Assembly: GCA_002104905.1 (NCBI GenBank)
Contig: MCFE01000619.1
Coordinates: 1 to 52,362, forward strand
Direction of reading: 5' to 3'
Origin: Basidiobolus meristosporus CBS 931.73
Lineage: Eukaryota > Fungi > Basidiobolomycota
Length of the DNA stretch: 52,362 nt
Below, piece after piece: positions 2,961 through 49,582 of this stretch (positions are counted from its first letter, which is position 1; the number at the start of each line of letters is the position of its first letter). The translations under genes were made by a program, and so were the position numbers. The notes under the pieces are model-generated. The model made no database searches, was not told the DNA's origin, and saw only the letters and a program-made list of their open reading frames with translations.

Positions 2961-2964
2961 TGGT

Positions 2965-5650: not shown

Positions 5651-5662
5651 CTCCCCCTCAAC

Positions 5663-8600: not shown

Positions 8601-9558
8601 CAGTAGCTTCCAATGCAGAGTTATCTCCCAGATAAACCTTTCTTACGGGAATAGTCTTGAAGTTGCTGAACCAATCCTTTATACCACAAATATGCTGTGA
8701 TGCTCCAGAGTCAATATACCATTCATTACTTTGGTTACTTGCACTCTCTTGTACAGTGACAAATAACTGTTCATCAGTAGTTATATGGTTTGCCTGCTCT
8801 AGTTTCTGTTTTTTGTCTGCTTGTTTCTTCTTGCATTCTCTTGCCCAGTGTCCTGGCTTTTTACAGCAGTTACAGCAGCCAGGTTTACTTCGGTTTTGTT
8901 GCTTTCCCTTCTTTTCTGTATGCCTTTCTGAACTGAATAAAGCATTATCTTCAATTTTCTCTGCTTGATCATTACGTCTGAGTTCTTCATGGAGAAGTCT
9001 TCCTTTGACATAGTCTAAAGTCAAGTTGTCTTCTCTGCTTTCAAAAGAAAGTATGAGTAGCTCATACTTGTCCGGTAGGCTGCAAAGCAGAAAGAGTATC
9101 TTTTCTTCATCATCTACACCAGCATTAATACTGTAAAGTTCTTCGGCAAGTGTCTCCATTCTGGTAATGAGTTGTAGCATGTCATCATCTGGCTTCTTCC
9201 TCATATTGAAGAACTTTTGTTTCAAATAAAGCTTGCTTGATACTGACTTTGCTCTAAAGATCTTCTCTAAGAATTCCCATACTGCTTTGGCAGTATTTGA
9301 GGCATGGATTTGTCCAATGAAGGAGTCTTGCACATTGATGTATATTGCATTGAAGGCCTTTCTCTCCTTCTCTTGAAACTTCTCCACATCTTCTGCTGCT
9401 CCTTTGGGCTCAACTTCCTTTTCTGTTACTATGTTCCAAAGCTTTCTTTCCTCAAGGTGGATCTGCATCTTGATTCTTCAAAGTCTGTAGTTCTTCCCAT
9501 CAAACCTCTCCTTTACGGGGAAGATGCTGGTATTGCTTTGTTTGCTGGTAGAAGTCAT
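5663..9558 (-). pseudogene. Disrupted copia gag-pol polyprotein
   Basis: ATG ~9558; in-frame TGA in YRL*RIKM; CCHC knuckle CCNCCKKPGHWAREC; protease WYIDSGASQH; WHRRLGH; integrase HSDICGP/SDNGGEY/NGVAERANR; RT with YVDN; RNase H. Frameshifts near 8545, 6700, 6455 and 6297. Confidence 0.95.
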
Positions 9559-9594
9559 CTTTAGAATAGATTAAGGCAATCGGGGCTCATAACC

Positions 9595-9963
9595 TGTTGC
9601 AATTTAAGAAGTGATTTGGATATAAGGAACTTATCAAGTAATAGTGATAATAGTTGAACTGTTGTTTATTCATAAAGAAGCTCAGTATTTATACCTTTGT
9701 AGAAGTAATACAGCTGCAACACTAAGTAGGGAGGGTTTCTCAATATTCAGGAGCATTCTATAACAGTTTCAAGGTTAGTACATAATGTTTGGTAATAGTG
9801 CTAATTTGATCCTGACTATAGGGGAATAATCATAAGACCATATATCTGGAGAAAGTGGCAAAGTTAAGGCAGTAAATGAGTCCTACAGTGACTCAGACTA
9901 GCCTAGAATTGTTAAGTAAATTTTTAGCTGCTGAATGATACCAAATAGTCCAATATTTCAACA
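9595..9963 (-). repeat. 5' LTR of copia-1
   Basis: 369 bp, followed on the minus strand by the PBS. Confidence 0.97.
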
Positions 9964-12979: not shown

Positions 12980-15900
12980 TGAGTACTGATGAAAAAGTGA
13001 TATAAAAGCATTACATTGTTGAGTGTCATGCTGTTTGCCCCATGGACAAGATTACTTTGATGCAAAACCATAAGAGAAGAGAAAACAGACCATGTGGCTG
13101 TTGTAGCAAGCCTCTCAGCCATAGAGCATGCAGACAGCATAGCAAGTATTAATAGGATCATAGTCAGTGTTTTGCCACACAAGTCATATTTGACCATTCA
13201 CCAGTCACTTTGGTATTAACCAAATCTTGCCAGCCACTTGATACTTCTATAAAGGCATCTGGCCATACTTGTCACCTTGTGCTAACTGAGTCAGGAGTGT
13301 TTATGACACCTTAGGCTCACCCAAGCCTTCTGAATATGGCACACAAAGTGATAGTTCTGAAGAAGCTGGCTCACAGATGGATTGTGAGCCTATTTTCCCT
13401 CACAACAGTGCCCTCCATGAGCCTGGCAAAATCCCAAGGTGCCCAACTTGTCAGGAATCCACTACCATTTTGGGGAAACATTGTTCACACTCTGGATATA
13501 TTCTTGTAATACCCGGTGTAAAGAAGTTCATGCAGTCCAACAAATATTGTGAAGCTATAGAATACTGCACTCAGTATAATCAAGCGCAAATATATCAGAA
13601 ATATCTGATGGCAAAATTACAAACAGCTAAGAAGCAAGGGCTACTTTGAAGGTATGTATAACCATGCCTTTGCCTTGGCACTTGATGGACTATCATTAAA
13701 CAAGTACTCTGCTAGCAAATCCTGCTGGCAACTGATTCTCATTAACCTGAATCTGCCACCTATCTTATGGTATCAGAGCCAAAATCTGATGGTTGTATCA
13801 CTGTTATCAAGGCCTAAATCACCATCCAACCTGAATAGCTACCTGTATCCATTGCTGGGTGAATGTTGTATGCTTTCCATCAGGATAACAGTTAATGGCT
13901 GTCATTTAAAAGCACATATTGTCATCTGCATCAAAGATACCCCAGTCATCAGCAAGATAGCAGGCTCTTCTGAGTACAATGGACTGTATTGCAGTCAAAT
14001 GTGTGAGATCCAGGGGACTTACTCCATAACACATACACATTATTATTACCCAAACACCAACACTAAGAACATCATATTTCCGCAACAAGAAGATACCAAA
14101 GTCAGCATACAATTGCAGCAAAGCTGGCAAGCTATAAGCCATTGGCCAGAATATGGAATTAATTGCAAACCAGAGATACTTGAGATAGAGTGAAATTGTG
14201 GGTGCAAAAGCTTTCCACTAGGAGCAATGCATTTGCTTTTCAAAAGTATCCATATATTGATGACCATATTGTACATGGTGCATTTAAGCTAGATGAGACT
14301 TTTGATATACCAGAAAAATTTGAGAGAATTGGCAAGATATTACAGAGTATCTGCTATCCTAAGTATTTTGCACAGGCTCCAATGAACCTTCATATGTATA
14401 TGCAGCAATACAAGTGCATAGATTGGATGAACTGTATATGTATTTATTAAAATGGCCTTTGAAGCCATTTCTACCAAGAGTACATTGGAAGCATTGGGAG
14501 TCATATGTGGACATTGTAGGAATATGTTACAAGTGCTGATATAAGAGTTGAAGAGGAATAGGGAGTTTAGCTGGCATTGTACTCACAAAACCTTGAACTG
14601 ATCTTTAATGAGGTTCCATGAGCTCCTTATCTTCATGCTGTCTGATTGTACTCCCTAATGTAGGTTGTGGCTGATGACTCATTTGATTGCATCATCATCC
14701 GCACCCAATAAGATCCTACTTACTATATCTATTTCTGTCTGATAAGGATCCGCTAAATCATTTGCTGACTAACACCAATAATATACTGGTAGCCTAAACA
14801 TAATACTAACTGATTTGACTAAAACGGATCTAACTCAAACATTCAACCAGTAGATCATCATAAATACTTATTCAGAAGTGGATCACCAATGCCAACTTGA
14901 TGCATCTTCAGCTTTTGAGCAAAGTGTTTGTGAATGCAGTTGAACCATATACTAAAAGCACAAAGCTGAATGTGTAGATCTCTGCTGCTACTGTATCCGC
15001 TTTCTACTCTATCTTGCTTGGTGTGTGGAGAATATTGGACCTTGCCTTACATTTTGGGTGTTTCCTATGAAGCAGATGTGCAGGGAGATAGGAAGACAAG
15101 TCAAGTTGCTGGTACTACCATATCCTAATCTTATCAATAATATTACCTTCAAGTCTGTCATGGATGTGAAGAGATGATACATGGAGGACAGCCAGGAAGA
15201 GTTAGATTATACTGAGGACAGATGTGCAAATGGAGACACCTATCCCTATGGCATTAAGTAGCTAAGCAGCCCCAATGAATGGGTAATTAGTTAATTAATG
15301 CAAAGCTGGGATGGGTGCAACAAGCAAATAATTATGATTACAAAAACTCTACCAAGGTACGCTGGATTTCTCTTGGTAACAAGCCAGTTTCTACACCATG
15401 CAATACTGAATTCACTCAAACAAGAGCCAGAGCACACCTATAAGGGGGACTAGAATCTAGCATGGAGAAGGAATAAATTGGCAATATTCCAAAAAGTTCT
15501 TTGTGGATATTCAAGAGGTAATCAAGGCAGAGGTGGTGGCAACCAAGCATATGTCTGCAAGATGTATATGTTACTAGAAATACAAGGCATACAGCATCTT
15601 TGCAAGTATCACCCTAAAAAGTCACAAAGCTGAGGAGATAGAAGCATATCAATTGTGGCAAGTGTGTGCATTTGTAGAAGCTAGAAAGCAGGAGGCTATA
15701 GTATTTTTTGATCCAAACAGCATGCAAAATACCCAAGGTAGTAGTGAGTAAGCAAATAAAGGGGGGTAATTATACAGTGGAATATATACACTGTGCAAGG
15801 GGAGGTGGAAAAAGGAAATACCATGTGGTAAATTTATATGTTAGCATTGTAAAGAACTAGCTGTAGGTCCCATACTGCAATAATAATGCCATCAGCGGCT

Positions 15901-16250: not shown

Positions 16251-16559
16251 ATGACACCATACCAGAGAGAAGCTACATCCTAACTTGGCCAATTATAGGC
16301 CAATTATGCTCAAATAAAATGCAGCAGAAATCCTGAGAGTGCAGCTACCTAATGGTAGGAGATATGATGGGATACAACCAGCACCTTAAAATATTTACTC
16401 TGATTGTAAGTACAGAATATTAAGGAAATTGAAAATTGTCTCAATGACCTGAAACTCTGTATATTTACTCCTATGAATCCTCTGCTAGCAACTGAATATT
16501 AGCATTTGCATGGCTCTGCAATCAGCTTAAATACTGTGCAGCAATGCAATACAAAACAA

Positions 16560-17880
16560 ATGACTATTATATAAATGTTTTAATTTGCCAAGTCACTTCT
16601 AATAAGTCTCTGATATCTGAAGACAATGAACGTACAGTGATATAACAGGTGATTGAGTGTCCACAACAGAAGGTGAGAAAACTGGTAGAAAACTTATAAA
16701 AGTCACTGATGTATTTCTTTGATGAGATGCTTTGACAATGCTTTTTGTGAAATCTGAGATGCAATTTCTTTCAGAGTCTTTACACAGTTTCCTAATGGCA
16801 TTAATACATTTGAGTCATTGGGCTTTGATTTTGCAATGTCTACTTGATAAGATCACCACAACAATTCCTCATATGGTATCTTCCTTACTCAACCAATTAC
16901 CCAAACATTGTGGCTACTTGAATACATACCCAGTTAATCCAGTCCTTGCATTTGTATTGTTGCACATGCGTATGAGATGTTTGAAGCTTGTGAGAAACAG
17001 CATAGGTAGTGGATACTCTCTAATATCTTGTCAATTCTTTCAAGTTTCTCCAGTATCACAACAGGCTCATTTGTGCTTAGACATAACAGTGAGCTACATG
17101 TATTCTGCTGGATGGCATAGAAAACTATTCTAGCAGTGGAATCAGGTAGCTAGCCAGGTGTGATGGTAGTTTATGATGTAAGAGTCTTGGAGATATTGGA
17201 AGTGATTGGGAGGACAAGTAGATTATGTGGTTTTCACTTAATGATTTATTGAATGTAATAGTATTATTTATACATTTGCATGGCCTTGCCATAACAAACA
17301 CACAGAATAGGTTAAGAAAGGTCCCAAAGCATGTGTGCAAACTTTGGGGCTGTTTGGACAACTTTGAGAATTTCATGTTCTGGGTACCTGGTATTGTGGT
17401 GAAAATATTGTAGGTATATCCTGACAGGGAATTTGACCTGTATTCTCTAGGATTTGAAGGTAATGATCAAGTGACTAAGCTAGGTGAATAATCAGGGAGA
17501 ATTGCAAATTTTTACAACAGTTTAGACTCAGTCAGCAGTGAGACTATCATCAGATATCTGCTCTGACACAATGAGATTAGTGGCAGATTCTGGCTAAATG
17601 AAGTTGGTTGCCAGCAGAGTTTGCTGGCAGTTTACCTACTTAGTGAGAAGCCATCAAGTGCCAAGGCAAAGGCATAGTCATATATAACTACAAAGTAGAG
17701 CTTGCTTTGTAGTTGTTTGCAATGTTTGCCAATGAATATTGTGGCAATGTTTGCACTTGACTGATGTGGAATTCTGTACTTTTTAGCTTGACAATGCTTG
17801 CTAGACTGCATAAGCTTCATTAGACAGGAAATTGCTTGAATATGTCCAGAGTGTGAAAGATGCTCTCCTCATATGGTGGT
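16560..17880 (-). mobile_element. Second CACTA-like transposase relic, convergent with the first
   Basis: Minus-strand YAFALALDGFSLS and KLPSHLASYLIPLLE match 13654..14193; 16930-17050 matches 14320-14440. Confidence 0.7.
17174..17519 (-). repeat. Solo LTR, copia family C, with TSD
   Basis: Homologous to 38644-38993. TSD GTTTA at 17169-17173 and 17520-17524; removing it rejoins the CACTA reading frame. Confidence 0.9.
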
Positions 17881-24680: not shown

Positions 24681-25075
24681 TAGAATCATATTGGAAGCTC
24701 TGGTTGCCAAGTTCAGCTCCATTAGGACAGTTGTAGCCCTGGCAGCTCTACACAGCCTAGTTCTATACCATATGGATGTCAAAGCAGTCTTTTAAATAGT
24801 CATTTGAAAGAAACTATATATAAAGAGCAACCAGAGGATTTTATCTATCCAAAAGGCCCCCATACAGTGTGCAGATTAAGGTAATTGTTTTATTACTTAA
24901 GCAGGCACCTAGAGCATATCATAACAACATTGATACATCCAGAGGAGTTTGGGTTCATTTGTAGCACTGCAGATCACATTAGATATGTGAAGCAGCTCAA
25001 AAAGGGTGTGCTCATCCTAGTCCTTTATGTGGATGACCTAATAGTTGCTACAATTGACCAGGAGGCACTCAAACA

Positions 25076-28000
25076 TGTGGGTTATTACTGACTGTACTTG
25101 GTGAGTGGGAGAGCTTGTAGGTCAAGTCAGTACCACTTGGTTCAGAATAGCTTCCGATAGAAGGTAGTAAGGTAATAAAGACTTCTGTTTATTTTGTCCA
25201 AATCTTGTTGTTCTTCCTGGTTCAATTGGGTAGATATATATATCACTTGGGGGGGCTTAGACAATAGACAATGTGTTATAAAATAGGGGTGTGAACACCT
25301 TCCTGTTATGGTAAGTGTTCTAACTAGATAAGGGCAGGGATAGGAGGGGAGGACGTGTGGGGGAATCATAGGGAGGGTACTGGAGGACTTTGGGTAGGAC
25401 TCTGGAGGGAACTCTTGGGAGAACTCTTGGGCAAAGAGTGGGAACTACATTAGTAATCACATATCCCGGGGGTTAAGTGGGAGCTTTGTCCTCGAAGTTC
25501 TTTGACTAACTCGCTTCTCCAGGATTGATTTTGTTTACGGAGCATCTTGGTTCTCGCTAGTGGGAGGGGTATTGCCAGTTTTGGGTGAACTGTTTCCTTT
25601 GGCGCTTTCCATATGCATTCTTTTGTTCTCCCCTTTGGGCAAACTCCCTTGCGCATATTATTTGTACCTATATTGACTAAAATCTCCTCTAATAAACTTT
25701 GAATGTATCCCGTGTCTTCCTCTATCCTTGTCCTGATAATTGTTTAATCACACTTTGGTCTCAGTGATGATTGGTGGATCATCATGAAACGGTTTCAGAT
25801 GGGCTGGCGCTACATTGCTGATTGTCTTATTATTCAGGGTGATGGTGTACTTTGGTCTGTGGTCCAAACTGATAACGGTGCATGGGCCAATCCATCGGGG
25901 TGTAAATTGTGGGCAGAACTTGAGGCCTGCAACGGTTTGGTCGTACCACACCTTATCGCCTGGTTTCCACTTTCGTCTTGTTAGTTTCTCATTTTTGGGT
26001 GGAGGGGGAAGGTGCTTGTCAACATTTTCGAATACTTTTATGTATAGGTGGGCGATACAGTGTATCAACCTTTCTATATAGTTGTTATGTGTTGTCAGGG
26101 GGACACCTTCCATCGTCAATCCAGCTTCCTCCCGCCACTTGGGTCTTCGTCCATATAGGATTTCATATGGGGAGAAACCCGTCGTTTTATTCGGTGTGGT
26201 GCGCATTGCTAGGAGTGTCAGTGGGAGCAGCTCAGCCCATGATTGGGGAAGTTCCCAGTGAAGCTTCTCCAGTATGCGGCAACACGTCTGGTTCATCCTC
26301 TTGGTTAATCCGTTAGTCTGGGGGTGATACGTGGCTGTGAAGACTTGTTTCACACCCATCATTTCGCACAGGTGGGCCACGGTGTTGTTCAGGAAGGAAC
26401 CACCATTGTTGGACAGGAGTATCTGAGGATATCCGTGTTGGCAGATGAGACATTCTAGAATGAATCGGGCGGTTGTCTTCTGATCTTTATTGCTGACGGC
26501 TTGGGCTTCTACCCACTTTGAGAAATAATCGGTAGCAATTATTATGTATCATTCTCCTTTCTTTGTTTTCATAAAGGGGCCAACAAAGTCAATCCCTACT
26601 CGGTGGAAGGGCAGGTCAACCGGTATTGGTGCGGTTGTCCCTATCTTCTGACTCCGGATGAATCTTTTGCAAGTGGTGCATCTTCGTAACGTATTCGTAA
26701 CGTCGGTCATCATTTTTTGCCAATAAAACATTTTTCTTAACATCTTATATGTCGTTAGGGGGTTACTGTGTCCTAATGACATATGTCTTTCTCGTATGAT
26801 TTCTTCATGGGCTGCTAGTGGGGGTACCTCGGCTCTGGACTGTCCTTGGAGGAACCATAGTTGATTTTCTTGTACTTCGTACTGACACCATTTCCTTCAA
26901 AATTCTCTCTTCTGTTTGTTTGTAACAACATGTTTGGGATACCTCCCTTTCTTTTTAAAGCAGATTACGTCCTTGTACTCATCACTGACACGTATTTGGC
27001 AAACGGGATAGCGACTGAGGAAGTCTGCGTCCTGGTGTTTCTTGCCAGCGCGGTGAATTATTTCAAAGTCGTATTGCTGTAGTCGTAGGGCCCAACGTGC
27101 TAGTGGGCCGGTAAAGTCTTTAGTTTTCAATAGCCAGACCAGTGCGCTGTGGTCCGTTACTATTGTGAATTGGCGACCATATATGTATGTATGGAATTGT
27201 TTAATTGAATAAACAACAGCCAGACATTCTATCTTGGTAACGGGGTAGTGGCGTTTGTGTTTGTTTAGCGAACGGCTCACGTAACCAATCGGGTGGAATT
27301 TGCCGGGTTGGTGGTATTGTCCCAGTACGGCGCCTATACCGGTGAGGCTTCCATCACAGTTAATAAAAAATCTCGCATCCCAATTGGGAAATTGTAACAC
27401 TGGCGGTGACATCAGGGAATGTTTCAGCTGATCAAATGCTCTCTTTTGAGGCTCCAACCATACAAAACACTGACCCTTTTGCGTCAATTCGTATAGGGGG
27501 GCTGCTATTGTCGCAAAGTTTTTGACAAAGCGGCAATAGTAGCCGGCTAATCCTAGGAATCCCAACACTGAATTAATGTCCTTTGGTGCAGGTGCATTTT
27601 GAACGGCTTTCAGGAGTGATGTAGATGGGTATATTCCATCTGCCAAGATCTTGTGGCCCAGGAACAACAATTTTGTATACAGGAAATGGCACTTCTTGGG
27701 ATGTAGTTTGAGTTGGTTCTTGAGGAGGGATGTCAGGATACGTTGCATGTCGTGTATATATTCTTCTACATTGGGGGAATATATCGTGATGTCGTCCAGA
27801 TACACAAGGGCGCATTCCCATCGTAGATTTCCTAGCACCTTGTCGATCATCCTTTGGAACGTAGCGGGGGCATTGCACAAGCCAAAGGGTAGTCGGTTCC
27901 ATTTGTATAATCCAAACAATGTTATAAAAGCGGTTTTGGGTCGATCTTCTGGGGCTACTTCTAGTTGCCAATACCCGGAGATTAAGTCAAGAGAGCTAAA

Positions 28001-30791
28001 ATATTTAGCTCCGATTAATCTGTCCAAGAGGTCGTCTATTTGCGGTAGCGGATACACGTCCTTCCGGGTGATGGCGTTCAATTTCCGGTAGTCGATGCAA
28101 AAGCGTCACTTTCCGTCTTTCTTTGGGACTATCACTACGGGGGAGGCCCACGGAGACTGGCTCTCTGTAATGATGTAGTCTTTTAATAAAGTTTCAATTG
28201 TCTCTTTGATATAATCTGTGTCAATTTTTAAATTCCTATAGGCTTTTTGCTTGATGGGGTATTTGTCTGCAAGGTGGATTTGGTGATATACCCCAGGTAT
28301 ATGACCAATTACTTGGTTCTTAGAGAATACTTGGGCAAGCAGATGTATTCCTTCTAGGAATTTGTCTTGTAACGTAGGCGGTAGACCGGGGTCCACATCT
28401 AGTTTGGGGAGTTCTTCTTCTGGTTCTTTGTTTGGAGGTGGTCCTTGGTTGTTTCCGTCAACTTCCTCTAAGTTTAACAATGGCACTACTCTAGGCAATG
28501 TCACCGTGTGTCGCCCGTTGTTAACCACTAAGCATTTCAGGCTTTGCGTTTCAAATTTTGGTGGTATCCATACTTTAGGGATCAAGATTCCTTCCAGTTG
28601 CTTGGATGCTTTTGCTGCGGTTATCATTCTTCCGCTCGTTGAATAAGCTATTGGTGTTTCTAATGAGATCACCGTCTCACTGGCGGGTGGTATTTTTATC
28701 ACCTTTCGTGTGATGATCAGAGACTGCGATAGTTTCACCTCTTCAATTGTCACACTGTTGCTACGCGCCTTGCTCTCATCAGTGATATGAATCAGTGGGA
28801 TACTCTCGGTATCCCACCTGAGTTCAGATGCACTGTAAAGTATATCCATCTTATGTTGGATAAACCAACTCTCGCCAATGAGTAAGTTGTTGGCTGCAAC
28901 AGGTAGGACCACAACATCTTGGCGTATTATCAAGTTGCCTAGCCAAATGGGGCAATTAGGCACCACACCTACCGTTGTATCCAGTTGGTCATTCACTAGC
29001 CGTACTTGAATGGTGTCGTTGGGGACTATATTTAGTTTTAGACGTTTTGCTAATGACTCTGACATGATCAACGTAGAGGATCCTGTGTCGATAAGGGCAA
29101 GAATCTCCTTATTCTCTATACGTACCTTTACGTATGTACCTTTATTCGGTTTTTGCAGGACCGTCTGGTTGACATGGAGGGTTGTTATCTCCTTCAATCC
29201 CTCTATCAGTTCCTTGACTAGAGCCGGGGCCAGTCCCAGTAAATTGGTTATTGGGAGGGTTGCCTTGGTTTGCTCTAGTACCTTCACTATGGGGAATAGG
29301 CCATGGGAAGATGTGCTAGCGTTCTTTGTTCGCTTTAACACTTCTTCCCAAGGTTCATTCCGTACTTCTTCACCTAATTCCGCGCTCTTTCCTTTTGACG
29401 GAACCTCTACTTCAGGTTCCTTTGCCTCCTCTCTAGAAGCATCATGTTGACACTTCTTCTTCCGCACTTTGATTGTCCTGACCGGAGGGCTTAGATTGAC
29501 TGAGTCCCGTTGGCCTCCTTGCGAGGGACTCTGTCTTTTGACACCTTCTTCTCTTTTGTGTCCGGTACAGCTTCTCTTCCGTACCGTTTTTCACATTCAT
29601 GGGCCTGGTGACCTACTTCTCCACACACATAACACGGATACTGTCGTTGCGGTCGTTCCATCTGTTGGGTCAGGACTTGAACCTGGGCCTTTAGATCTAC
29701 AACAGCTTCCCAGAGTTTATCACCTTCTTTGGGGACTTCTTGGACATTGTTGATCAAGAGTTCTTGGACCTTTCGCCGTAATTCCTCTAACTCACGGTCT
29801 TTTGGGGAGGCAATTTTTCCTTTCTTACGGGGGATCCCTGTCCTTCGATCATTTGTATCACTATAGGGTAGCCCCCATAGCAAGATGACCCCTTGTACTT
29901 GTTCAACCAACTCTTGCAATGTTTTACATCCCTGTTGTTCTTTGGACGCCCTACATCTTATTTTGTCGTCTAAGCCCATGATGTAATACCTCATGAGCTG
30001 TCGTTTGGCAATTTTGTCCTTTGGGAGACATTGAACTTGTTGGAGAAACAGCTCAGTGTGGGCTTCATAGCTTTCACTGCTTTTCTTCCGCAAGGACAGT
30101 AGAAGGGCTTTGTAGTGCTATCGTTTGGCATATAGAAAGCGTGTCTTGTAGGCTTCTTCTAGTGCATCCCAGTTGTCTTTGACTGCGTCTTCCAACCCAT
30201 AATGCCATCGCCATGCTGACCCTTCCATATGTCTTGCAAACTCTCTTACTTTCTTATTGTCGTCCCATCCTGCATCAACCGCAACTCTCTCAAACTTATC
30301 AAACCACTCAAGGGCTTTCTCTCTCTTTCCCTTGTATGTTTTTAGTTTGATTGTAGTAGTCATTACCTCACTTGTGCTTATTTCCACAGAGACGGCACCA
30401 AATATGTGGGTTATTACTGACTGTACTTGGTGAGTGGGAGAGCTTGTAGGTCAAGTCAGTACCACTTGGTTCAGAATAGCTTCCGATAGAAGGTAGCAAG
30501 GTAATAAAGACTTCTGTTTATTTCGTCCAAATCTTGTTGTTCTTCCTGGTTCAATTGGGTAGATATATATATCACTTGGGGGGGCTTAGACAATAGACAA
30601 TGTGTTATAAAATAGGGGTGTGAACACCTTCCTGTTATGGTAAGTGTTCTAACTAGATAAGGGCAGGGATAGGAGGGGAGGATGTGTGGGGGAATCATAG
30701 GGAGGGTACTGGAGGACTTTGGGTAGGACTCTGGAGGGAACTCTTGGGAGAACTCTTGGGCAAAGAGTGGGTACTACATTGAGTACTCACA
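25076..30791 (-). mobile_element. Full-length Ty3/gypsy LTR retrotransposon (family F), recent
   Basis: LTRs 25076-25461 and 30405-30791 (5 substitutions + 1 indel). TSD AAACA at 25071-25075 and 30792-30796. PBS TGGTGCCGTC (30391-30400, minus), resembling a tRNA-His 3' end (inference). Domain order gag-PR-RT-RH-IN; no chromodomain seen. Confidence 0.98.
25748..30387 (-). pseudogene. Disrupted gypsy gag and pol
   Basis: CCHC CYVCGEVGHQAHEC; protease LIDTGSS; RT YLDD; RNase H; integrase GH..YW..C..C. In-frame stops at 30118, 28106, 26897 and 26549; extra base in the G run near 26820. Confidence 0.95.
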
Positions 30792-36719: not shown

Positions 36720-38643
36720 TTTAGTTTTAGCTTACTAGAAGCACTTCTATATTGTTGATAAGCCTCTACATTGTAGAGCAACCCCAAACTAATCATGATA
36801 TAACACAACAATTCACTACAACATAATTTCCTTTGGAAACATTAGAGGAGAAGTATTCCTAGTGCTGTGGACCATCTATTGCAATCTACTAAGGTAACAC
36901 CAATGCTCTGACACAGGAGATTTAAACACATCAATTTTGATTATTTGTGCATAATGATCAGAGATCAGCTAATTTCCTGAGTAAATTTGCTCCCCCAGCT
37001 GGTTTGGAGCACTGTAAAGCCTGTATATATGTGAAACAAGCCATACAATTGCCCAAGAGCTCTGGGTTAATCAAAACTATGAAAAAATTAGATTGAACTC
37101 ACTCAGATATGTGTGGACCCATGCAAAATTTATTCTTAGGTGGGATGAAGTATTTAATCCCATTTATTGATGATTATGCATGATATACTTGGGTATACTT
37201 CATGGAGAGAAAGGAAAAAGCTTTATCTAAGCTTGGGTAGTTTAAAGCCATGGTGGAGAGAAAAACTGGTGAAAAAATCAAGGAAACATGCTCAGACAAT
37301 GGTGGCAAATATACCTCAAAACTCTTCATCCACTTCTGCAAGATTCATGGGATAAAGCAAGAGACTACTGTACCATACTCCTAATAGCAAAATGAAGTAG
37401 CAGAATGTGCAAACAGATTAATAGTTGATATGGCAAGATCTATGATCTATGATCAAAAATTGTCCTATGAATTTAGGCGGAATCAGTTGCCACAGGTCTA
37501 TACCTGAGAAATAGAAGTTACAATAGAATACTGTGTGATTCTACACCATTTGAAGCATGGCATGGATACAAACCAAGAGGAGCACATCTAAGTATATTTG
37601 GATGTATAGCATATGCCAAGAAACTGCCTGGAAATCAGCCAAATTTTGAGCCAAAGAGTGAAAAATGCATATTTTTTGGCTACTGCAATGAGAGTAAGGC
37701 ATTAAAGCTCTAAAATACCAAAGCAAAGAAGCTGATTAAGTCTAGGGATGTTTTACATGATGAAAATTCAAATTCTCACAAAAAATGACATCAGTTGATA
37801 ACAAAATTTTGATCTCAAGTCTACCAAAAGTCATGATTGAATCAGAGCAAAACAATGAAAACTCTTTCACTCTATAGGACTCTGCAACTGTAGTTCAGCC
37901 TGAATCAGTGCTCAGGAATATCCTAGAAGTGATCATTCTGGTATCAAATGCCTGGAGATCCCACCAGACATGAAATAGCCATCTTACTCTATCAATGAGT
38001 GTACAAACTTAACCTATGCCTATTTAGTCAGTATTGCTGAGCCCCAGACTGAAAAAGAGACCCTAAATAGCCCTCAGACAAAGTTTTGGAGATCTGCAAT
38101 CACTGAGGAATATCAGGCCCTGGTGGAAATCAAGCTTGGGACTTAGTCAAATTACCAATCAACCAAAAATCAATTGGATGCAGATGGTTCTTTAAGATAA
38201 AATACAAGGCTGATGGTATAGTTAAAAGATACAAGGCAAAAATTGTGACCAAAGGATACTCTGAAACAAAAGGATCTGACTATACTGACACCTTTGCATT
38301 GGTAGCCAAATTTAATTCCATCAGATTAATATTAGCTATTGCAGCCATACATGAGTTTTCATACATCAAATAGATGTAAAAACTGCATTTTTGAATAGAG
38401 AACTTGATGAGGACATGTATATGAGCCAGTCTGATAGGTTTGTTAACCTAGATAATCCCCATTTGGCCTGCAAGCTTAAGAAGACTGTACATGGTCTCAA
38501 ACAATCACCCAGAGCCTAGAATTGCAAGATAGATTCTTATTTGGAATCTTTGAGTTTCAAAAGAGTAATGCTGACTATAGTATATACTATAAGCCTGATA
38601 GAGCAAATCCAGTTCTATTAGCTCTATATGAGGATGATCTTTC
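36720..38643 (+). mobile_element. Copia family C pol relic (PR, integrase, RT start)
   Basis: HSDMCGPM at ~37100; colinear with 2965-4285 and the reverse complement of 44270-46170; many stops. Confidence 0.85.
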
Positions 38644-40247
38644 TGTTGTAAAAGTCTTGGAGATATTAGAAGTGATTTGGGAGAACAAGTAGATTATGTG
38701 TTTTCCACTTAATGATTTACTGAACATAAAAGTAGTATTTATACTTTTAGATGGTCTTGGCATTGCAAGCACATAAAATAGGTAAAGAAAGGTCCCAAAA
38801 ACGTGTGTCCAAAGTGTGGGGCTGTTTGGGCAACTTTGAGAATTTTCATTTTCTGGGTACTTGGCATTTTGGTGAAAATATTCTGAGTAAATCCCAACTA
38901 GGAATTTGGTCAGTATTCTCTAGGTTTTGAAGGTAATCATCTAAGTGGCTAAGCTAGGTGAGTATTTAGGTGGAATTACAAACTTTTACAACATTCCCAC
39001 TCAGATAAATGCTCATACTGACTAGTCCTAATTTTGACCTAAGATATTCAAACTTGTCTCCAGCTATTGGTTTGCTAAATATTTCTCCAATCACTACATC
39101 TGAAGGGCAGTAAACTAAGCTAGCTAAGTTATTCTCTATAGCTTCACATCTGAAATGATGTCAAATATCTATGTGCTTAGCTCTAGCATCAAAAGCTGGA
39201 TTTCTACTTAATTGTATGCATGCATGATTATCTTGAAGTAATGTAATAGGCATTTTTTGACATAGGGTTAAATCTGTAAAAAGCATTCTTAACCGCACTG
39301 CTTTTTTTGTGGCTTCATAGGCTGCAATATACTCTGCCTCTGTGGTAAAAGTGCCACATTTGGTTTCTTTCTTGAATTCCATGAAATTGCTCCTTTACAG
39401 TTGAGAAAGGTGTATCCTGTGGTGGATCTTCTGTCTCATAAATTTTGTCCCCAATTGGCATCAGTGTATCCCACAAGATCCTGTTCTGAATCCTTATAAG
39501 TGTATCTTAGGCAGATATCAGCAGTTCCTTTTAGGTATCTAAAAATCCACTTAACTGCTGCAATTTGATCATATCCATAGTTCTGATTATGCTAGCTGAC
39601 AACTCCCACTAAATATGAGATATCTGGACATGTTCCAAGCATTATGTACATCAGACTACCAATCATAGATTGATAAGGAAAGTCAGGGCTTTTGGATGGC
39701 ACCAAGCTCTCTTGATTTGGTTGAGTCTTGACCAAGTTAAGGCTCGTCTCCATTGGGGTAGCTGCTGGTATACAGTCTTCCATTTGGTACTTCTTTAGTA
39801 TATCTTGAATATACTTGGATTGGCTTAAGGTAATAGTCTGGGTACTTCTGTCTATGGAGAACTTAATCCCTAAGTAGTAACTGAGTTCTCCTAGATTGCA
39901 AATCTTGAACTCCTTATATAGGCTGGATTTAGTCTCTTCCAATGTTTCTAGGATATAGATGGCAATAATAACATCATCCACATATAAAGATAATAGTACT
40001 GAATTTGTTCTATCTGGCTTATAGTATATACTATAGTCAGCATTACTCCTTTTGAAACTCATAGGTTCCAAATAAGAGTCCATCTTGCAATTCCAGGCAC
40101 TTGGTGATTATTTGAGACCATATAGAGACCTTTTAAGCCTGCAGGCCCAGTGGGGGTTATCTTGGTCAAGGAACCCATTAGGCTGGTCCCTAAAAACTTA
40201 TATTTGGCTGCAATAGCCAATATTAATCTAATGGAATTAAACTTGGC

Positions 40248-43200
40248 TGTTGTGCATCAACAGTTAAAACTTAGCCAATTTCTCTCTGTTAGAAAATCTA
40301 GTACCCTAACTGATTTTCCCTAACCCATACATAACTAATCCCGGTTATGGTTTATTTTATCACTTCTCAGAATCTTTTTTAGCTGTCATACCTGATTAGC
40401 TTTCAAGTGGTTAATACATCCTCAACTGATCTGCAAAGCCTTTCCAAAGAATTAGTCATCTGGTATCCATCCAACCACTTAGTAGTTGCCAAGACATCAG
40501 CTGATTAATAATGCAATTTTTCATTTATCTTATGCACCTATTAGCACCCAAACAGATTTCAATTAGTCCAGTCTCTTAGCACTTACTAATTCAACTTGAT
40601 CAGAAAAATATAAATAAAGATTACTGAACCTTTTAGTTCAGTGTGCGTGTCAACAGTGTTGCAATATTCTGAGGAGTATTGGAAGTGATGTGGAGAACTA
40701 GGAGATTTACATGTTATTCACTTGTAGATTTATTGATCAAAAGTATGGTATTTATACTTTTGATAAAGTAGAGGAAACAAACGTGTAGAGTTTGTTAAGG
40801 AAGGTCCCAAGAATATGTGTGCAAAGTTTGGGGTCTTTTGGACGACTTTGAGAAAAATAATAATCTGGGTACCTGACAATTTGGTGAAAATATTCTAAGT
40901 AAATCCCGACAAGAAATCTATTCAGGACAGAATGCTAATCACAGAATAAGATCTATGTGACTAAGTTAGCATGAATATTTAGGTGACAATTCAATAATTA
41001 CAACACTCCCACTCAACAAAATATTCATGAGTAATAAATACATATTGTGAGTGTGCAATCTGTAATAAGTGTATAAGATTTAACTGTTTTGCATACTGGA
41101 CTAATATATTATCCAAAGGTGTATGCATTTGTGTTCAACTTAATAGAACAAGTAACTTGGAATTCAGTATGCATATCTACTTAGTAATATGCCTAAAAAT
41201 CTGAATGATCTGATCATAATACTAATCATCAACTTTGATCAGTTGTACGGGCTTGAATAATAAGCTGAGTCTAATTGACAGATTGTAATAATGGTATATA
41301 GCCTCTGGGCTATCCAATGCTTCTTATTTGAGCAAAATTGACCCACTTTTGGTCAAGTTAAGGTTTTGTCATTTATGGCAGATCTGGAGTTTCCTTATTT
41401 CTGGCCAACAGTCTAATCCATTTAGACAACTTCACTGTGTGTCCATATTAGGCTCAGGGACAGTTACTTCCATCATATAGATGCTATATGAGGTAAAAAA
41501 TAGTGACCTACTTTGGGTCAAGTTAAGGTTTTGTCATTTACGCCTGATCCGGATTATCCTTGTTTCCTGGCACTGTGGCACATATAACATGGCCAAAAAA
41601 GAAGGTTTTTGCTCAACTCTGAGCTGGGATGGCCTGCTCCCACTTGAACCACGTCTGTTTAGTGATTCAGATCCACAAATATGATCTAGAATGGTCATCT
41701 TTGTCTTCTTTAAATAGCAATAACTTTCTTTGGACTGATTACTTCATATGCGGTAGATTCAAAGTCCATTTGCTTCTTGATTTACCCAGTTTGGTATTGG
41801 ACAACACCATGGGTTGTTTGGTAGCTATTCTTAGAGTGCTTCTACTGATTTGGATTGATACAGCTGCTTTTGTCTTATCAGAATATACTTGTAGAATAGA
41901 GATTGGCGCTTTTCCAGAAGTGAGATTCTCCTTAACAAGGGCTTTGATTATCCTTATTCTCCTGATAGTTATTTTCAACCTTGAGCTCGGTTTCCAAGGC
42001 TAACTGATCTTCTCAGTGTCTTCAGAATCCATAAAAACCATCTGGTTGATCCTTGCACCTTTTTCTTTCAGCTCCATAGACAGCAGACATCAAGACTTCT
42101 GCACTAAATAATCTGTTCTAATATATACTACAATATCTAACAGATCCTGTTGAAGTTTCAAGGCTCTTCTGGGGTTTCTAGCTTGAGAACTTTGTACAAG
42201 AGGCTCCATAGAACATATCTGCATTGCCAGATAGTCCAAATATGGCCTACATAAGTTTTGACACCATTTGGGAAGTACCCTAGTTTCCGGTAGTAGTATT
42301 TTCCATTTTTTCTTCTGTTCTTTTTCTGCTGATGACCCAGGGATAATTCCTTTTGTGGGGTGGTTCTGGACTTCCTTGCAGGTGGGGCCACGGTGTTTTT
42401 GAGCACAAGAGTCTCCATGACATCATTGTTCCAGAATATCTGACTATTTGAGAGTGAAATAATCAAAATTGGCATCCACTTAGATCATTCATAACTTTTG
42501 ATAGAGTTGACCAAATTTGATCAAATAAACTGCATTTGATAGCTAGCTTCATCAATACTTTGGTATTAGACTCCAATATATCAGTATTTTGAGTTGCAGA
42601 ACTTGGCGGTGACTTGATCAATCAAAATTCTTTTGATCTGATCCAGAGAAGTTAAATATCACCAAGTGTTTTCTCCCACTGTAATAAGTGATATATATAT
42701 AACAAGTATAAAGTACTGTGTTATCTTCTGAGTGGCTCTTAGCTGTGTACTGACCAACTGTTGCTTGGTTGTATACTCCAATCAGGCTTGCAATTATATG
42801 CTTCACTCCTTTGGCTGGCGGTAGAATCTTCATGAGTTGATTTTGCTAAATTTGTATAATACTTTCTCCCACTGTTTTGAGACTTAAACAGAGTGATAGC
42901 ACGTCTAACAGCTCCATATTTAGCTCCTGGTACACTGGTTTCAGTATCAAAACACTTGATACAATTATAGCATTCTTCTAATGGATTGTGTAGTACATAT
43001 CCGTACTCCAGGTGGATATATATGTATTATATATCATTGGGATCCTTACAATTCAGGAAGCTTGTTTCTGAGATCTTTTTCCATCAGTAGATAGTCCAGA
43101 ATGGCGGCTAACAGCTCCAGTATTTGCATTCTCAGCTGTATTTTGAGTGGCAACAGATTTTTGGTAAAATCCTCCTCCGGCAATCATTTAATAATGATCT

Positions 43201-44261
43201 ATTTTTTTTTTTCGCAATTCAGGATAATATCCTATCCAAGAGCTCGTCTAACAGTCAATTGGGGTCATATGAATACATATTGCAGTATATTTCATTGTAG
43301 ATCTGGACCCTCAATTGCTGGAATTACGCAATTTTCTTCAGTAGTGGTAGAGCACCAACATACTATATTTCTTGACACAATTACATGCCAGTTTGATTGA
43401 CTCTTCTTCATAACTAACTTGGATAGTTACTGAAGGCATCTTTTGAAGGCAAGGCCTTCTTCTCCACAGCAATATCCTCATAAACATAGTCCTTTAGCAG
43501 CGGTAGTCTTCTTTAACCTTAGCGGAGCAATAGTGCGGAAAGTCTTTCTCCAGACTAGCAGAAAAGGATCCAAAGCATAGTAGACACCAAGAGGACAGCA
43601 AGCTTGGGGCTCATAACCTGTTGCAATATTCTGAGGAGTATTGGAAGTGATGTGGAGAACTAGAAGATTTACATGTTATTCACTTGTAGATTTATTGATC
43701 AAAAGTATGGTATTTATACTTTTGATAAAGTAGAGGAAACAGACGTGTAGAGTTTGTTAAGGAAGGTCCCAAGAATATGTGTGCAAAGTTTGGGGTCTTT
43801 TGGACGACTTTGAGAAAAATAATAATCTGGGTACCTGACAATTTAGTGAAAATATTCTAAGTAAATCCCGACAAGAAATCTAGTCAGGACAGAATGCTAA
43901 TCACAGAATAAGATCTATGTGACTAAGTTAGCATGAATATTTAGGTGACAATTCAATAATTACAACAAACAGAACTAAGATTGTGCCTCAGCAAAATTAA
44001 GATTTCAACAATTCTGTTCTAGTTTCCACCCAAGCCTAGCATATCTAGCATTCCCAAGAACACCAAGCCTAGCCTGTATAGCAAGCCAACTCTGTTGCCT
44101 TTATAGCCCAACTCAGCAATATATAAGACCAATATTAGACCAGTACTTCTCTGCTAATATTTCTGTCACCCTTGGCAATTCTAAGATTCTGCGTGTTGTT
44201 GTTACATAGGTTCAGTAATCTCATTCAACAGTATTATTACACTTTTCTCTTGGATACAACA
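40248..44261. repeat. Solo LTR (family E, ~700 bp; 40248-40656 + 43973-44261) inserted in the copia C RT
   Basis: TGTTG...CAACA termini; flanks TTGGC/TTTGC (1 mismatch). Removal restores in-frame RT FALVAKF. Confidence 0.75.
40657..43967 (-). mobile_element. Non-autonomous copia-type LTR element (D), 3311 bp
   Basis: 349-bp LTRs 40657-41005 and 43619-43967 with 4 differences. TSD AACAG (40652-40656, 43968-43972). PBS GGTTATGAGCCC (43607-43618, minus); PPT GTTGAGTGGGAG (41006-41017, minus). No minus-strand ORF longer than 105 aa in the internal region. Confidence 0.95.
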
Positions 44262-45418
44262 TTTGCTACCAGTGCAAAGATCTCAGTATAGTCAAATCCT
44301 TTTGTTTGATAGTATCCTTTGGCCACAAGTCTTGCTTTGTATCTTTCAATTGTACCATCAGCCTTGTATTTTGTCTTTAAGATTCATCTGCATCCCATTG
44401 ATTTTTGGCAATTTGGTAATTTGACTAAGTCCCAAGCTTGATTTTCCATCAGGGCCTGATATTCCTCAGTCATTTCAGATCTCCAAAACTTTGTCTGAGG
44501 GCTATTTAGGGCCTCTTTTACAGTCTGGGGCTCAACAATATGGACTGAATAGGCATAGGCCAAGTTTGTACCCTCATTGATGGAGTAATTTGGTCTATTT
44601 CTGGTGCAATTGGATCTCCAGGCATTTGATACTGGAATGATCATTTCTGGGATATTCCTGGGCACTGCTCTAGGCTTAACCATGGTTGTAGAGTCCTCTG
44701 GAGTGAAAAAAACTTCATTGTTTTGCTCTGATTCAGTCCTGACAATTGGTGGACTGGCAATAAGATTTTTATCATCATCTGATGTCATTTTTGGTGGAAA
44801 CTCTGAATTTTCATCAAAAAACACATCCCTGGGCTTGATAAGCCTCTTTGCTTTGGTATTAAAGAGTCTGTATGCTTTAATCTCATTGCAGTAGCTCAAA
44901 ATATGTATTTTACACTTTTGGGCTCAAGTTTTAACTGATTTCTGGGCAGTTTCTTGGCATAAGCTGTACACCCAAATATGCTTAGATGTTCTCCTCTTGG
45001 TCTGTACCCATATCATGCTTCAAATGGAGTTGAATTACAAAGTATTCTGGTGTAACTCCTATTTCTAAGGTATACAGCTGTAGCAACTGATTCCACCCAA
45101 AAATCATAGGATAATTTTTGATTGTGGATCATAGCTCTTACCATATCAATTATTGATCTGTTTGCACATTCTGATATTCTATTCTGCTGTGGGGAGTATG
45201 GTGCAGTAGTCTCTTGCCTTATCCCATGAATTTAGCAGAAGTGGATGAAAGGTTTTGAGATAGATTCTCCACCATTGTCAGAGCATTTTTTCTTGATTTT
45301 TTCACTAGTTTCTCTCTCCACCATGGCTTTAAACTCCCTGAACTTAGATAGAGCTTCTTCCATTCTCTCTATGAAGTGGACCCATGTTTATCTTGTATAA
45401 TCATCAATAAAAGTGATT

Positions 45419-45629
45419 AGACTTGTTCCATTGTGCCATTGATTGTAGTGCCAGAGAGCATTGTATATTTTGTTATTAATTTGATATTTTAGGGTTATAT
45501 GCATGTCAATTTTGATCCCAAATTGACACTGTATGGCACTATCTGGCATTCTGTGGTATGATCAGGCACCATCTGGCATGCTATGGCACTATTGGGCACT
45601 ATGATCAGTGGGAATGATGGAACAAGTCT
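45419..45629. mobile_element. 211-bp MITE
   Basis: TIR AGACTTGTTCCA / TGGAACAAGTCT; ATT on both sides (45416-45418, 45630-45632); subterminal GTGCCA/TGGCAC repeats. Removal restores the copia integrase sequence seen at ~37141-37170. Confidence 0.9.
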
Positions 45630-47651
45630 ATTAAATACTTCATCCCACCTAGGGATAAATTTTGCATAAATCCACACAGATCTGAGTGAATTAGATATAA
45701 TTTTTCTTGGTTTTGATTAACCCAGAGCTCTTGAACAGTTGTCTGGCATATTTCCCATATATGCAGGTCTCACAGTGCTCCAAACTAGCTGGGGGATCAA
45801 TTTTTACTCCAGAAATTAGCTGACCTCTGATCATTTTGCACAAATAATCAAAAATGATGTGCCCAAATCTCCTGTGCCAAAGCATTGGTGCTTCTTCATT
45901 TAAGTTACTTATATTGGCTGCCAAATGTGATGGAATATTAGTCAACTTGTATAGATTCTGATCTCTGATACCCAAAGCAGTATGGGCACCAATTTGATCA
46001 GTGATCCTGCATGCAGAATTTTCAAAGCTGAAGCTGAGTTCTTCTGCAGTGGCCTTACTTACAGATAGTAGGTTCTTGGTTATTTCTGATACATAGAGTA
46101 CCTCTTCAAAGGTCAGTGTATGGTCCCCTTCATTGCTTCCAGGGCTTACTTGGATAGTTCCTTCTTGCACTGCATCAAGCGTTCTATTGTCACCTATGAA
46201 AACCTTCTTGATTTGAATCTCTTAATATTGGGTAGAAGTCCTTTTTGGTGTGTAAAGTGTTGAGATACTCCAGATTCAATGTACCATATCTGAGAATCCT
46301 TGTTTGTGGTCATATTTAGTGCAGATATGAATAGTCTATCTTCAGTTGTTGCAGCATTTCCATATTCAGGCTTCTTTTGCTGATTATCTTTCTTTTTGAG
46401 ACACTGGTCTGATGTGTGTCCTTTCCAGTTGCAGTAGTTACAAAACAGGTTGCTGTTGCCTTTGTAGGGTCTTGGGTACCTCCTTTGTTGGTTAGCATTG
46501 CTTATTAAGGCATTTTCTTCTTCCTTCTTATTGGCACTTGATTTTCTTAATTCTTCATCCAGGAGCCTTCCATATAGGCAATTTAAGGTCAAATCTTCAG
46601 TTCTGGACTCTAGGGCTGATACAAGGCCCTGAAACCCGTCTGTCAGGCTATTCAGGATTGTAACTATCACATCCTCATCAGTAGTTGGTATGCCCACAGA
46701 TTCCATCTCATCTACCAGCAGGGTAATTCTGTTAATTAGATTTTTCATTTCTTCTCCTGGCAGCATCTTTGTAGTAAAGAATTTTTGTCTCAGATACATT
46801 TTCTTGGCAGCTCAACATGACTGGTAGGTGTCTTCTAATGCTTTCCAGGCATTCTTTGTTTTGAAGAAGGTTCCAAAGAATCATGTACAAAGAATGAGGT
46901 TGAAAAGGCAAACTTTCAGAATGCCACCAAAGCTCAAGATAGCTCTACCTAACCCAACATCCCAAACAAACGACATATGAACTCAATGGTTCATAGTCCA
47001 GCAATTGGCCGAATGGAGGACTCCTGGGCTTTTTGCCATCTGCGTAATGGAGAAGAACCCATAAAAGATCTTGCCAAATCAACCCAAACACCACCTGGAG
47101 TTTGGAAACATTGGCCAGAAATGAGATCGTGATTACAATTAGGCGCCGAACCAAACATCCACTCACAATGGGCCACCATATTATCATTATGATGATGATG
47201 ATGATTTGCGATACGTGGTGTTGAGCACATTCAAGCACATTCAGATCATGCAATCCCAGGATAGTGGCTATGCGAGGTTATTTGTGGGTTGGACCTAATC
47301 AATGCGTCACTGGGAGACCATTAGCTTCGGATTCATTGCGTCTTATCGACCACGCCGATCTCTGGTCGCCAAGAGATGACCATGCGACAATCTCGCCCAG
47401 ACAGCCAATAGAGATCGGAAGATTCCAAAGGAAGAAGAGGATGGGAAGAGTTCGATTCACCTTCCCGTGGTTGAAGAAGTTGCCTAATGCGTAAGATAGC
47501 CGTTTCAGGTTTCGATTCACCAGCCAATCTGCAGACCGAAGACCGATTCCCTGGAATTCAAGGGATCCTAGGGTCATTGTCCTGGTCGGGTAAATATTTC
47601 ACTCGTGTGGCCTATAAATGGGATGAAAGGGCACAGTGGCTATCGATTATC

Positions 47652-49582
47652 ATGAGTCCTTTCAATAGATTGCATTTTTCCAAGCCGCATCAGCAGCAGC
47701 AGCAGCAGCAGCAGCAGGAGGACAGCCTCCCCTATTTCACCCGGACGTGGAACGAGACGGACAGAGTGTCCGTGGTCAAACTGATCCTCGTGGCGATAGA
47801 GCAGCTTGGGGACAGGGAGTCTGATTGGATATCCCGGTTCCGAGAGAGCGTATTTCATCACTTCGCAATCGTCGACCCGATAGGTAAATCCAGTCAAGTC
47901 AACGCCACCCATGTCCCATGGCACTAACCAAACTTTGCATGCACCCCTTTAGAGCAACGATCGCTGGTGGCGGAGGGATACCGGAAGATGGAGGAGCAGG
48001 GTGGTTTGATGATCGACGCGTTGGCCAGATCCCTCGCTGGCCCAAGTAGAGATCTACGCATGGAGGTCCTCTGGGATTTCCTCTTGATTTGCCTCGGTTT
48101 GCTCGACACCCACCAGGAACGCGGTACGGAGTCAAGAAAGGAGATCAAGAAGCACCAGGAGCACGAGAATAAAGTCGGCGAGTACGACGCGCGATCCCGA
48201 GCCGCTCTGTTCCGCCTGGCGAGCATCCTGTACCTCCCGGCCGAATACGCTCTTCACACCGAGCAACGCGTAGCCGAGGCACTTTTCCTGGCCAAACTGT
48301 CCGGGCAAGATCCGGGGGACGCCATGGAGGAAACCACAAAAGCGAGTGTCGACGCGCGTTCCAGAAAGAAGAAGTTGAGGTGGATCGCCACCGGAGTTTC
48401 TGCCGTGGTTGGCGCCACGGCCATCGGGCTTACAGGTGGTCTGGCGGCACCGTTGGTCGTAGCGGGAGTAGGTGCACTTGGTCTTGGCGGCACAGCATTC
48501 CTCGCCTCGACTACGGGAGTGGCAGTCATCTCCTCGTTGTTCGGGATTGCTGGAGGTGGATTAACCGGTAAGCCAGGCTATAGCTCAGACGCAGTCCATT
48601 CAAGCGCCACTAACCAGGTTATGCTTCATAGGATTGAAAGTGACCAGAAGGATGCGCAGCCTGAGGGAATTCTACTTCAAACCTATCCATGTGACCGAAC
48701 AGGCTCCGTCCACACCTTCCCTCAACGTGACCATCGTAGTCCCCGGCTACCTGCGAACCCTGGATGACGCAACCTTCCCGTGGCAGATGAACTTCGCCAA
48801 CCAGCCACCTCACGACACATATAGTTTGGTATTCGAATCACAGGAGCTGCTCTCGTTGGGAAACGCCTTGGACTCTTTTCTCGCCACCAAGGCCGCCAGC
48901 ATGACGGCCAAACAAATCATCAAACACACGGCCATGGCACCGCTGATGGCGTCGATAGCACTCCCCATGTCCCTCATCAAGGCAGGGAATTTGATCGATA
49001 ACCCATGGATCACCGGGATAGACAGGGCGAAGAAGGCAGGTCTTATCCTAGCGGACGTGTTGGTCGAGAGAGTGCAAGGCCACCGGCCGACTTCTTTGGT
49101 AGGTGGAGGAGGAGGTTGATCGCAAGTTGCGGCACCATGCTAACCCTTTTGTTTCCCACCACAGGTCGGCTACTCCCTGGGTGCGTTGGCCATCTTCGAA
49201 TGCCTTGTGGAGCTCGCGAATCGCGGGAAATCCGGCCTGGTAGACGAAGGTAAGTTGGACTCGCATGAGATCTCCTCGAGATCGGCTGGCTAACAACGAT
49301 GTAGTGATCTTGCTAGGGGCCCCGATCACGATTGACCCCAAGCGCTGGATGGCGGCTTCCAGCGTTGTTTCGCGCCGGTTTGTGAACGGCTACTCGAAAA
49401 ACGACTGGGTGCTTGGTTTTCTGTTCCGAGTGCATAACCTGAGCCTCAATGCGGCCGGCCTGGAACCAGTGGACATTCCGGGGATTCGCTCGGTCGACCT
49501 TACCGAAGTGGTCAGTGGACACAACACCTACCTCGACCATCTGGACATCGTGCTAAAGCATGTGGAGGCATCCGGTTTATAA
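47652..49582 (+). CDS. DUF726 / TMCO4 (yeast Mil1-like) alpha/beta-hydrolase-fold protein, 558 aa
   Basis: Model join(47652..47883,47953..48567,48632..49098,49165..49249,49305..49582) = 1677 nt, GT-AG introns with CTAAC branch sites. ATAIGLTGGLAAP Gly-rich segment, GHRPTSLVGYSLGA nucleophile elbow, VNGYSKNDWVL, H near the C-terminus. Start codon inferred. Confidence 0.9.
47690..47718 (+). repeat. (CAG)n tract encoding poly-Gln
   Basis: HQQQQQQQQQE in exon 1 of the DUF726 gene. Confidence 0.9.

Follow-up and report, generated by a model that had tools for sequence, protein, structure and literature searches.

How can a retrotransposon that inserted recently, with a complete set of cis signals, hold nothing recognizable as a gene? 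This question is raised by an element of 3311 bp with a complete long terminal repeat (LTR) structure, located on the minus strand at positions 40657-43967 of contig MCFE01000619.1 of the fungus Basidiobolus meristosporus CBS 931.73 (GenBank assembly GCA_002104905.1). The whole stretch analyzed, 52,362 nucleotides, is referred to below as the window, and the element as the young element. A previous reading of the DNA letters alone (the original prediction) had regarded it as a recent insertion with an anciently dead copia-type interior, moved by the enzymes of another element. Based on the analysis presented here, the young element is very likely a non-autonomous copia-type LTR element, whose interior was already gene-less at the time of insertion and which was copied in trans by another element's enzymes.

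Architecture and age of the young element

The two LTRs differ at four of their 349 positions (three transitions and one transversion) and contain no indel, corresponding to an identity of 98.85%. They carry the tips TGTTG...CAACA and are flanked by a perfect 5-bp target-site duplication (TSD), AACAG. Direct LTRs, TG...CA ends and a short TSD (5 bp for copia) are the features of a Ty1/copia-type chassis. The pair is the youngest in the window, the corresponding identities being 98.0% for a Ty3-type element and 97.3% for a coding copia at 5283-9963 on the minus strand (hereafter copia A). A primer-binding site (PBS) and a polypurine tract (PPT) are both present and abut the LTRs. The recent insertion and the intact priming sites that had been claimed for this element were thus confirmed.

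The original prediction had also described the LTR as a distant relative of those of a second copia family, family C, and the alignments bear this out. The LTR of the young element aligns end to end and collinearly, with 71-74% identity, to the three family-C LTRs compared (1609-1955 on the plus strand; 17170-17519 and 38643-38992 on the minus strand), which are 81-84% identical among themselves. The TATAAATA block, the AATAAA block and both tips are kept in all four, while no similarity to the copia A LTR was found except for the tips. In the 5' LTR, the AATAAA lies 15 nt downstream of the TATA box. The components of the young element, in its sense direction, are the following:

43968-43972, unstranded: TSD AACAG, upstream side
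43619-43967, minus strand: 5' LTR, 349 bp, tips TGTTGTAATT...TATTGCAACA, collinear homologue of the family-C LTRs
43711-43718 (5' LTR) and 40749-40756 (3' LTR), minus strand: TATAAATA box, putative promoter, in a block conserved with the three family-C LTRs
43691-43696 (5' LTR) and 40729-40734 (3' LTR), minus strand: AATAAA, putative polyadenylation signal, conserved in the four aligned LTRs
43606-43618, minus strand: PBS GGTTATGAGCCCC, 13 nt, half-tRNA priming type, directly after the 5' LTR end ...TTGCAACA / ...TATTGCAACA
41006-43618, minus strand: interior including PBS and PPT, 2613 bp, longest sense open reading frame (ORF) of 110 codons, no detectable homology
42050-43615, minus strand: stretch of the interior in which stop triplets are most depleted on the sense strand (z about -3 per 522-bp block; plus strand at expectation)
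41334-41401 and 41499-41566, unstranded: pair of 68-bp direct repeats (84% identity) within the interior's 3' part
41006-41016, minus strand: PPT TTGAGTGGGAG, directly before the start of the 3' LTR (TGTTGTAATT)
40657-41005, minus strand: 3' LTR, 349 bp
40652-40656, unstranded: TSD AACAG, downstream side

The Ty3-type element used for the age comparison (25064-30791, minus strand) has LTRs of 398 bp at 25064-25461 and 30394-30791, and its ORFs match zf-CCHC, aspartyl protease, RVT_1 and RNase H.

Nesting in an older copia

An older copia, likewise on the minus strand and oriented the same way, surrounds the young element, which sits within its reverse transcriptase (RT) region, as located by tblastn with the copia A proteins. 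This host copia is still recognizable, with hidden Markov model (HMM) matches of 27-156 bits. Its parts are listed below; the 5' LTR was looked for in the window and not found.

38643-46850, minus strand: host copia, older, family C (tblastn with copia A proteins, HMM matches and LTR alignment)
46203-46850, minus strand: gag (tblastn)
44899-45975, minus strand: integrase (tblastn)
44264-44902 and 40054-40197, minus strand: RT in two pieces, with the insertion between them (tblastn)
39023-39642, minus strand: RNase H (tblastn)
38643-38992, minus strand: 3' LTR, family C (LTR alignment)

Given that the young element is nested within this host, its interior cannot have decayed in place further than the host itself. 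The interior has been at the site for less time than a copia that can still be recognized, and thus it was gene-less already on arrival. Since it arrived without genes and was inserted with a TSD, the RT and the integrase came from another element. This argument holds even if gene conversion homogenized the LTRs. The proposal that coding capacity was lost before the insertion, which implies copying in trans, is therefore upheld by the young LTRs together with the nesting.

Around 726 bp between the two RT pieces (40198-40656 and 43973-44239), directly flanking the young element, could be assigned no identity. As this DNA stands between the RT pieces and the young element, the latter was inserted into something that already interrupted the RT. 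It lacks terminal repeats, whether inverted or direct, gave no signal with the copia HMMs, and may represent an earlier insertion or a rearrangement.

Absence of recognizable genes in the interior

Stop-free runs in the interior reach at most 126 codons (plus strand) and 110 codons (minus strand), in agreement with the claim that no long ORF is present. The Pfam search was run on 30 stop-to-stop pieces of the interior, including all minus-strand stretches of at least 28 codons, with E values up to 10, and no retroelement family was retrieved, only unrelated chance matches. In addition, HMMs of 53 copia polyproteins and of 38 gag sequences retrieved with copia A were run, unfiltered, on all six-frame pieces. 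In the interior they scored at best -1.3 bits for pol and 2.8 bits for gag, and 40 shuffles reached maxima of 2.4 and 3.9 bits, respectively. The same models gave about 19-156 bits on the decayed copia elements of the window, the poorest relic (2951-4279) still scoring 19-35 bits. The young interior is indeed harder to recognize than the older relics, as had been noticed, and the profile scores of its pieces stay at shuffle level.

Pairwise comparisons gave the same picture. With 15 transposon ORFs of the window (copia and Ty3) as tblastn queries, the best hit in the interior had an E value of 0.067 and was on the wrong strand, and tblastx of the interior with the copia A and family-C gag regions reached 0.09 at best, with hits that were not collinear. 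Rfam had no match to the interior at E values up to 1. Word searches of large protein collections (5.8 billion) with the pieces 41623-42000 (plus strand) and 42742-43026 (minus strand) found no relatives, and a full HMMER search with the piece 42093-42422 (minus strand) against 1.84 billion representatives found none at E values up to 0.001. An exact look-up of 19 window ORFs in the protein collections found none of the 19 on record. For the piece 42093-42422, the single-sequence AlphaFold model has a predicted local distance difference test score (pLDDT) of 44, and in the ESM Atlas another interior piece had no usable match.

The young element therefore lacks the gag-pol organization, with protease, integrase, RT and RNase H in order, that defines an autonomous copia. 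The minus-strand peptide strings that had been quoted as faint gag, zinc-knuckle, protease and integrase traces in copia order are present in the translations, but they are no more than expected by chance: Pfam, BLAST and HMM results are all at noise level and nothing is collinear. Two further strings were considered and rejected, the zinc-knuckle-like CYNCIKC (~42985) and KYYYRKLGYF (~42300); zf-CCHC does not match there, and one CxxC per strand is expected by chance.

Shared signals and the proposed mobilization cycle

The 13-nt PBS of the young element is identical in copia A (9582-9594), where it follows the LTR end ...AATTGCAACA, and in a family-C remnant (1016-1028). The PPTs are shared as well: TTGAGTGGGAG of the young element corresponds to TTGAGGGGGAG of copia A and to TGAGTGGGAA of the adjoining family-C copy, where TGTTGTAAAA follows. 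This primer site is presumably the complement of GGGGCUCAUAACC, the stem-loop that carries the anticodon in initiator Met tRNA. Ty5 and Drosophila copia are both known to be primed by a half-molecule of this tRNA (PMC10886601, PMC5371799, bioRxiv 10.1101/2025.04.25.647736), and TGTTG/CAACA tips together with a half-tRNA primer site are described as hallmarks of Ty5 (bioRxiv 10.1101/2025.04.25.647736). A metagenome scan with the 22-nt junction of LTR end and PBS retrieved two soil contigs, Ga0137420_1030069 (314-338) and Ga0137419_10179798 (92-121), both with the LTR end and primer site AATATTGCAACAGGTTATGAGCCCC and both from unrelated copia elements; in the second one, the LTR end and primer site run on into a gag-like ORF. 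The presence of the same junction in unrelated soil copia indicates that a copia lineage has this set of signals in common and that it is not peculiar to the young element.

With family C, the young element shares the LTR length, the TATA and AATAAA blocks, the PPT core TGAGTGGGA, the LTR start TGTTGTAA and the PBS; however, nothing is alike between PBS and PPT, and the family-C copies in the window are older and decayed. One of these, at 931-1608, retains an LTR's final 85 bp, the PBS given above and the start of gag, whose DNA is 76% identical to that of 46568-46862. At 1609 this remnant is truncated by a further family-C LTR that runs in the same direction. The LTRs of copia A measure 368 and 369 bp, its TSD is of 5 bp (CTATC) and its ORFs are of 308 amino acids (gag, Pol_BBD), 570 amino acids (integrase and the start of RT) and 210 amino acids; the domains found in them are Retrotran_gag_2, Pol_BBD, gag_pre-integrs, rve, SH3_retrovirus and RVT_2. 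A partial copy of it, with 79% protein identity, is located at 10640-12348 on the plus strand.

From these signals, a cycle can be proposed. The RNA would be made from the 5' LTR, with the TATAAATA box as promoter, and end in the 3' LTR, with its AATAAA. Its packaging would fall to a coding copia's Gag, in all likelihood that of a relative of family C because the LTRs are homologous. Reverse transcription would be primed at GGTTATGAGCCCC by the half-molecule of the initiator Met tRNA and the plus strand at TTGAGTGGGAG, and the helper's integrase would act on the TGTTG...CAACA tips, leaving the 5-bp duplication.

Several results weigh against a non-autonomous element copied in this way. A second copy of the interior was not found in the window, where nhmmer gave a single weak match of 60 nt (16273-16334), and labels such as "family" or "trans-mobilised repeatedly" rest here on one copy, so that the multi-copy family is a putative one. 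Moreover, the window holds no intact helper, as copia A has at least seven lesions to be read through and the family-C copies are decayed. When the 500 nt following the PBS and preceding the PPT were compared with those of copia A and family C by Smith-Waterman alignment, the scores were at the level of shuffled sequences, and at this level of comparison no shared packaging signal is visible in the leader or in the 3' untranslated part beyond PBS and PPT. The predicted fold of the leader RNA is not unusually stable either (z -1.1).

Origin of the interior

Although no gene can be recognized, the composition of the interior is not that of random DNA. On the sense strand, 131 stop triplets are found in all frames and 192 are expected from first-order Markov shuffles (z -5.4), while the opposite strand is near expectation (170 versus 158). 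The resulting ratio of 0.68 equals that of copia A (194 versus 266). The path through the whole interior with the fewest lesions has 21 frame changes or stops, compared with 33.3 +/- 3.3 in shuffled sequences, a value like that of the relic at 36983-38558, and over 42050-43615 it has 12, compared with 20.6. The interior and copia A are alike in the triplets that are most strongly depleted (TAA, CAT and TAG) and in those that are enriched (TAT, TAC, CCG, CAA and TGG); the strand-asymmetric trinucleotide profile of the interior correlates with that of copia A coding DNA with an r of 0.67 (standard deviation of 0.22 and maximum of 0.64 in 300 shuffles). The base composition (34.5% A and 27.9% T) is also as in copia interiors and not as in LTRs. 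The stop shortage and the copia-like composition hint at a coding past without proving one.

These are the observations that favor the interior being a copia gag-protease-integrase region in extreme decay, with RT and RNase H lost, in a lineage that has long been non-autonomous. They are joined by the piece 42093-42422, whose nearest clusters in the ESM Atlas are retroviral Gag at 0.79-0.81, a value within the stated noise of the tool and reached by shuffled sequences one third of the time. Still, we consider this origin possible but doubtful. Neither profiles nor pairwise comparisons give any signal, the weak matches are not collinear, and copia relics with equal ORF decay still score 20-100 bits. 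In addition, with stop density taken into account, ORF lengths show no over-dispersion (z 1.1), and no local frame stands out. Concatenated non-coding LTRs are stop-poor in the sense direction too (89 versus 113 expected), and their trinucleotide profile correlates with that of the interior with an r of 0.43-0.53, so the bias may be partly compositional. Retroelement sense strands in the window share this trinucleotide bias beyond dinucleotides, with TAA, TAG and CAT low and TAT, TAC, CAA and TGG high; being weaker but present in LTRs, it may not be a purely coding signature. Codon-usage scoring trained on the transposon ORFs of the window was dominated by stops and gave no discrimination. Thus, the part of the original prediction that read the interior as an extremely decayed gag-protease-integrase finds no homology signal behind it, and what is left may be either a worn-out gene or an effect of sense-strand composition.

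A captured host transcript or another transposon, brought between the copia LTR, PBS and PPT by template switching during reverse transcription, is an unlikely source. It would agree with the lack of similarity to any part of copia, and the coding-like sense composition would suit a captured mRNA. However, no donor was found, neither Pfam nor Rfam has a match, and the three pieces searched in the large protein collections (one from the plus and two from the minus strand) are without relatives; apart from the weak 60-nt match mentioned above, the window has no other copy of any part of the interior. We give slightly less weight still to the idea that an orphan gene outside copia, possibly Gag-like, left the interior as its frame-broken remnant, the young element being one of a group of hitch-hikers on a copia chassis, with varied cargo, that are currently active in this early-diverging fungus. 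Such a remnant would account for both the coding-like sense strand and the three fragments without protein relatives.

It is very improbable that indel errors in the assembly mask a real ORF, such as that of an orphan Gag in a gag-only, TR-GAG-like element. The strong shortage of stops without a continuous frame would be expected in that case, and a run of 11 A lies at ~43205-43215 on the sense strand, but around 21 lesions in 2.6 kb predict some 5-6 indels between the LTRs. Since none is seen, assembly errors are unlikely to have caused the frame breaks, and other elements of the window keep ORFs of 300-570 codons. Finally, there is next to no chance that an old autonomous copia decayed in place and had its LTRs made young-looking by gene conversion, the alternative named beforehand as fatal to the original prediction, as the element lies inside an older, easily recognized copia and has thus had less time at its site, its interior is 2.6 kb long, compared with 3.9 kb for copia A, and it has a perfect TSD and LTRs free of indels between them. 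No observation speaks in favor of such decay in place.

Comparison with known non-autonomous LTR elements

Non-autonomous LTR elements are well known and include terminal-repeat retrotransposons in miniature (TRIM), large retrotransposon derivatives (LARD), terminal-repeat retrotransposons with a GAG domain (TR-GAG) and many unnamed intermediates. The young element, with complete cis signals and no coding capacity at insertion, belongs among them. The usual size limits are below 1 kb (or 1.5 kb) for TRIMs and above 4 kb for LARDs, with the range of 1.5-4 kb left unnamed in a continuum of sizes, and many non-autonomous families have no traceable domain remnants or partner (PMC13570524). LARDs are routinely annotated in fungi. 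With its 3311 bp, the young element is too short for a LARD in the strict sense and too long for a TRIM.

The likeness to LARDs lies in the LTRs, PBS, PPT and TSD around a non-coding interior and in the reliance on the proteins of a coding partner; however, LARDs (Kalendar et al. 2004, as cited in PMC13570524) by their usual definition exceed 4 kb and were reported from Triticeae, with gypsy-type partners, whereas here a 3.3-kb, copia-type element is found in a fungus. An interior that is conserved from copy to copy is a further hallmark of LARDs. TRIMs and "long-TRIMs" are likewise non-coding, have intact cis signals and are moved in trans, but the classical ones are below 1 kb with LTRs of 100-250 bp, compared with LTRs of 349 bp and a 2.6-kb interior in the present case. 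TR-GAGs are short and without pol, comparable in their size range and in a possible gag-like past, but they keep an open gag ORF; in the young element no gag ORF and no gag profile match exist, given the 110-codon limit of its sense stretches and the gag HMM score of 2.8 bits. Within the Ty1/copia superfamily, Ty5 and Drosophila copia share the half-tRNA PBS, and Ty5 also the TGTTG/CAACA tips (PMC10886601; bioRxiv 10.1101/2025.04.25.647736), but both are autonomous and have the gag-pol that the young element lacks.

Taken as a whole, the young element is an ordinary representative of a known non-autonomous LTR type, in the unnamed size range of 1.5-4 kb, of which it provides a clean example. 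It leaves the understanding of how non-autonomous LTR elements work unchanged. It points to some copia-type machinery having been recently active in this genome, serving a gene-less rider with the same primer site, PPT and LTR tips. It can also aid repeat annotation in a poorly sampled lineage, as the nearest relative of the copia A pol in the protein collections searched is only 49% identical.

Other features of the window

Outside the LTR elements, an ORF at 13654-14193 (plus strand) matches Transposase_21 (tnp2, CACTA/EnSpm type) with an E value of 2.5e-12. Another one, at 47967-48767 (plus strand), matches DUF726, and the G+C content rises up to 56% over 48-50 kb. The ORF probably belongs to a host gene, as one of its exons, and lies in the right end of the window, which is rich in G+C while transposons fill the rest.

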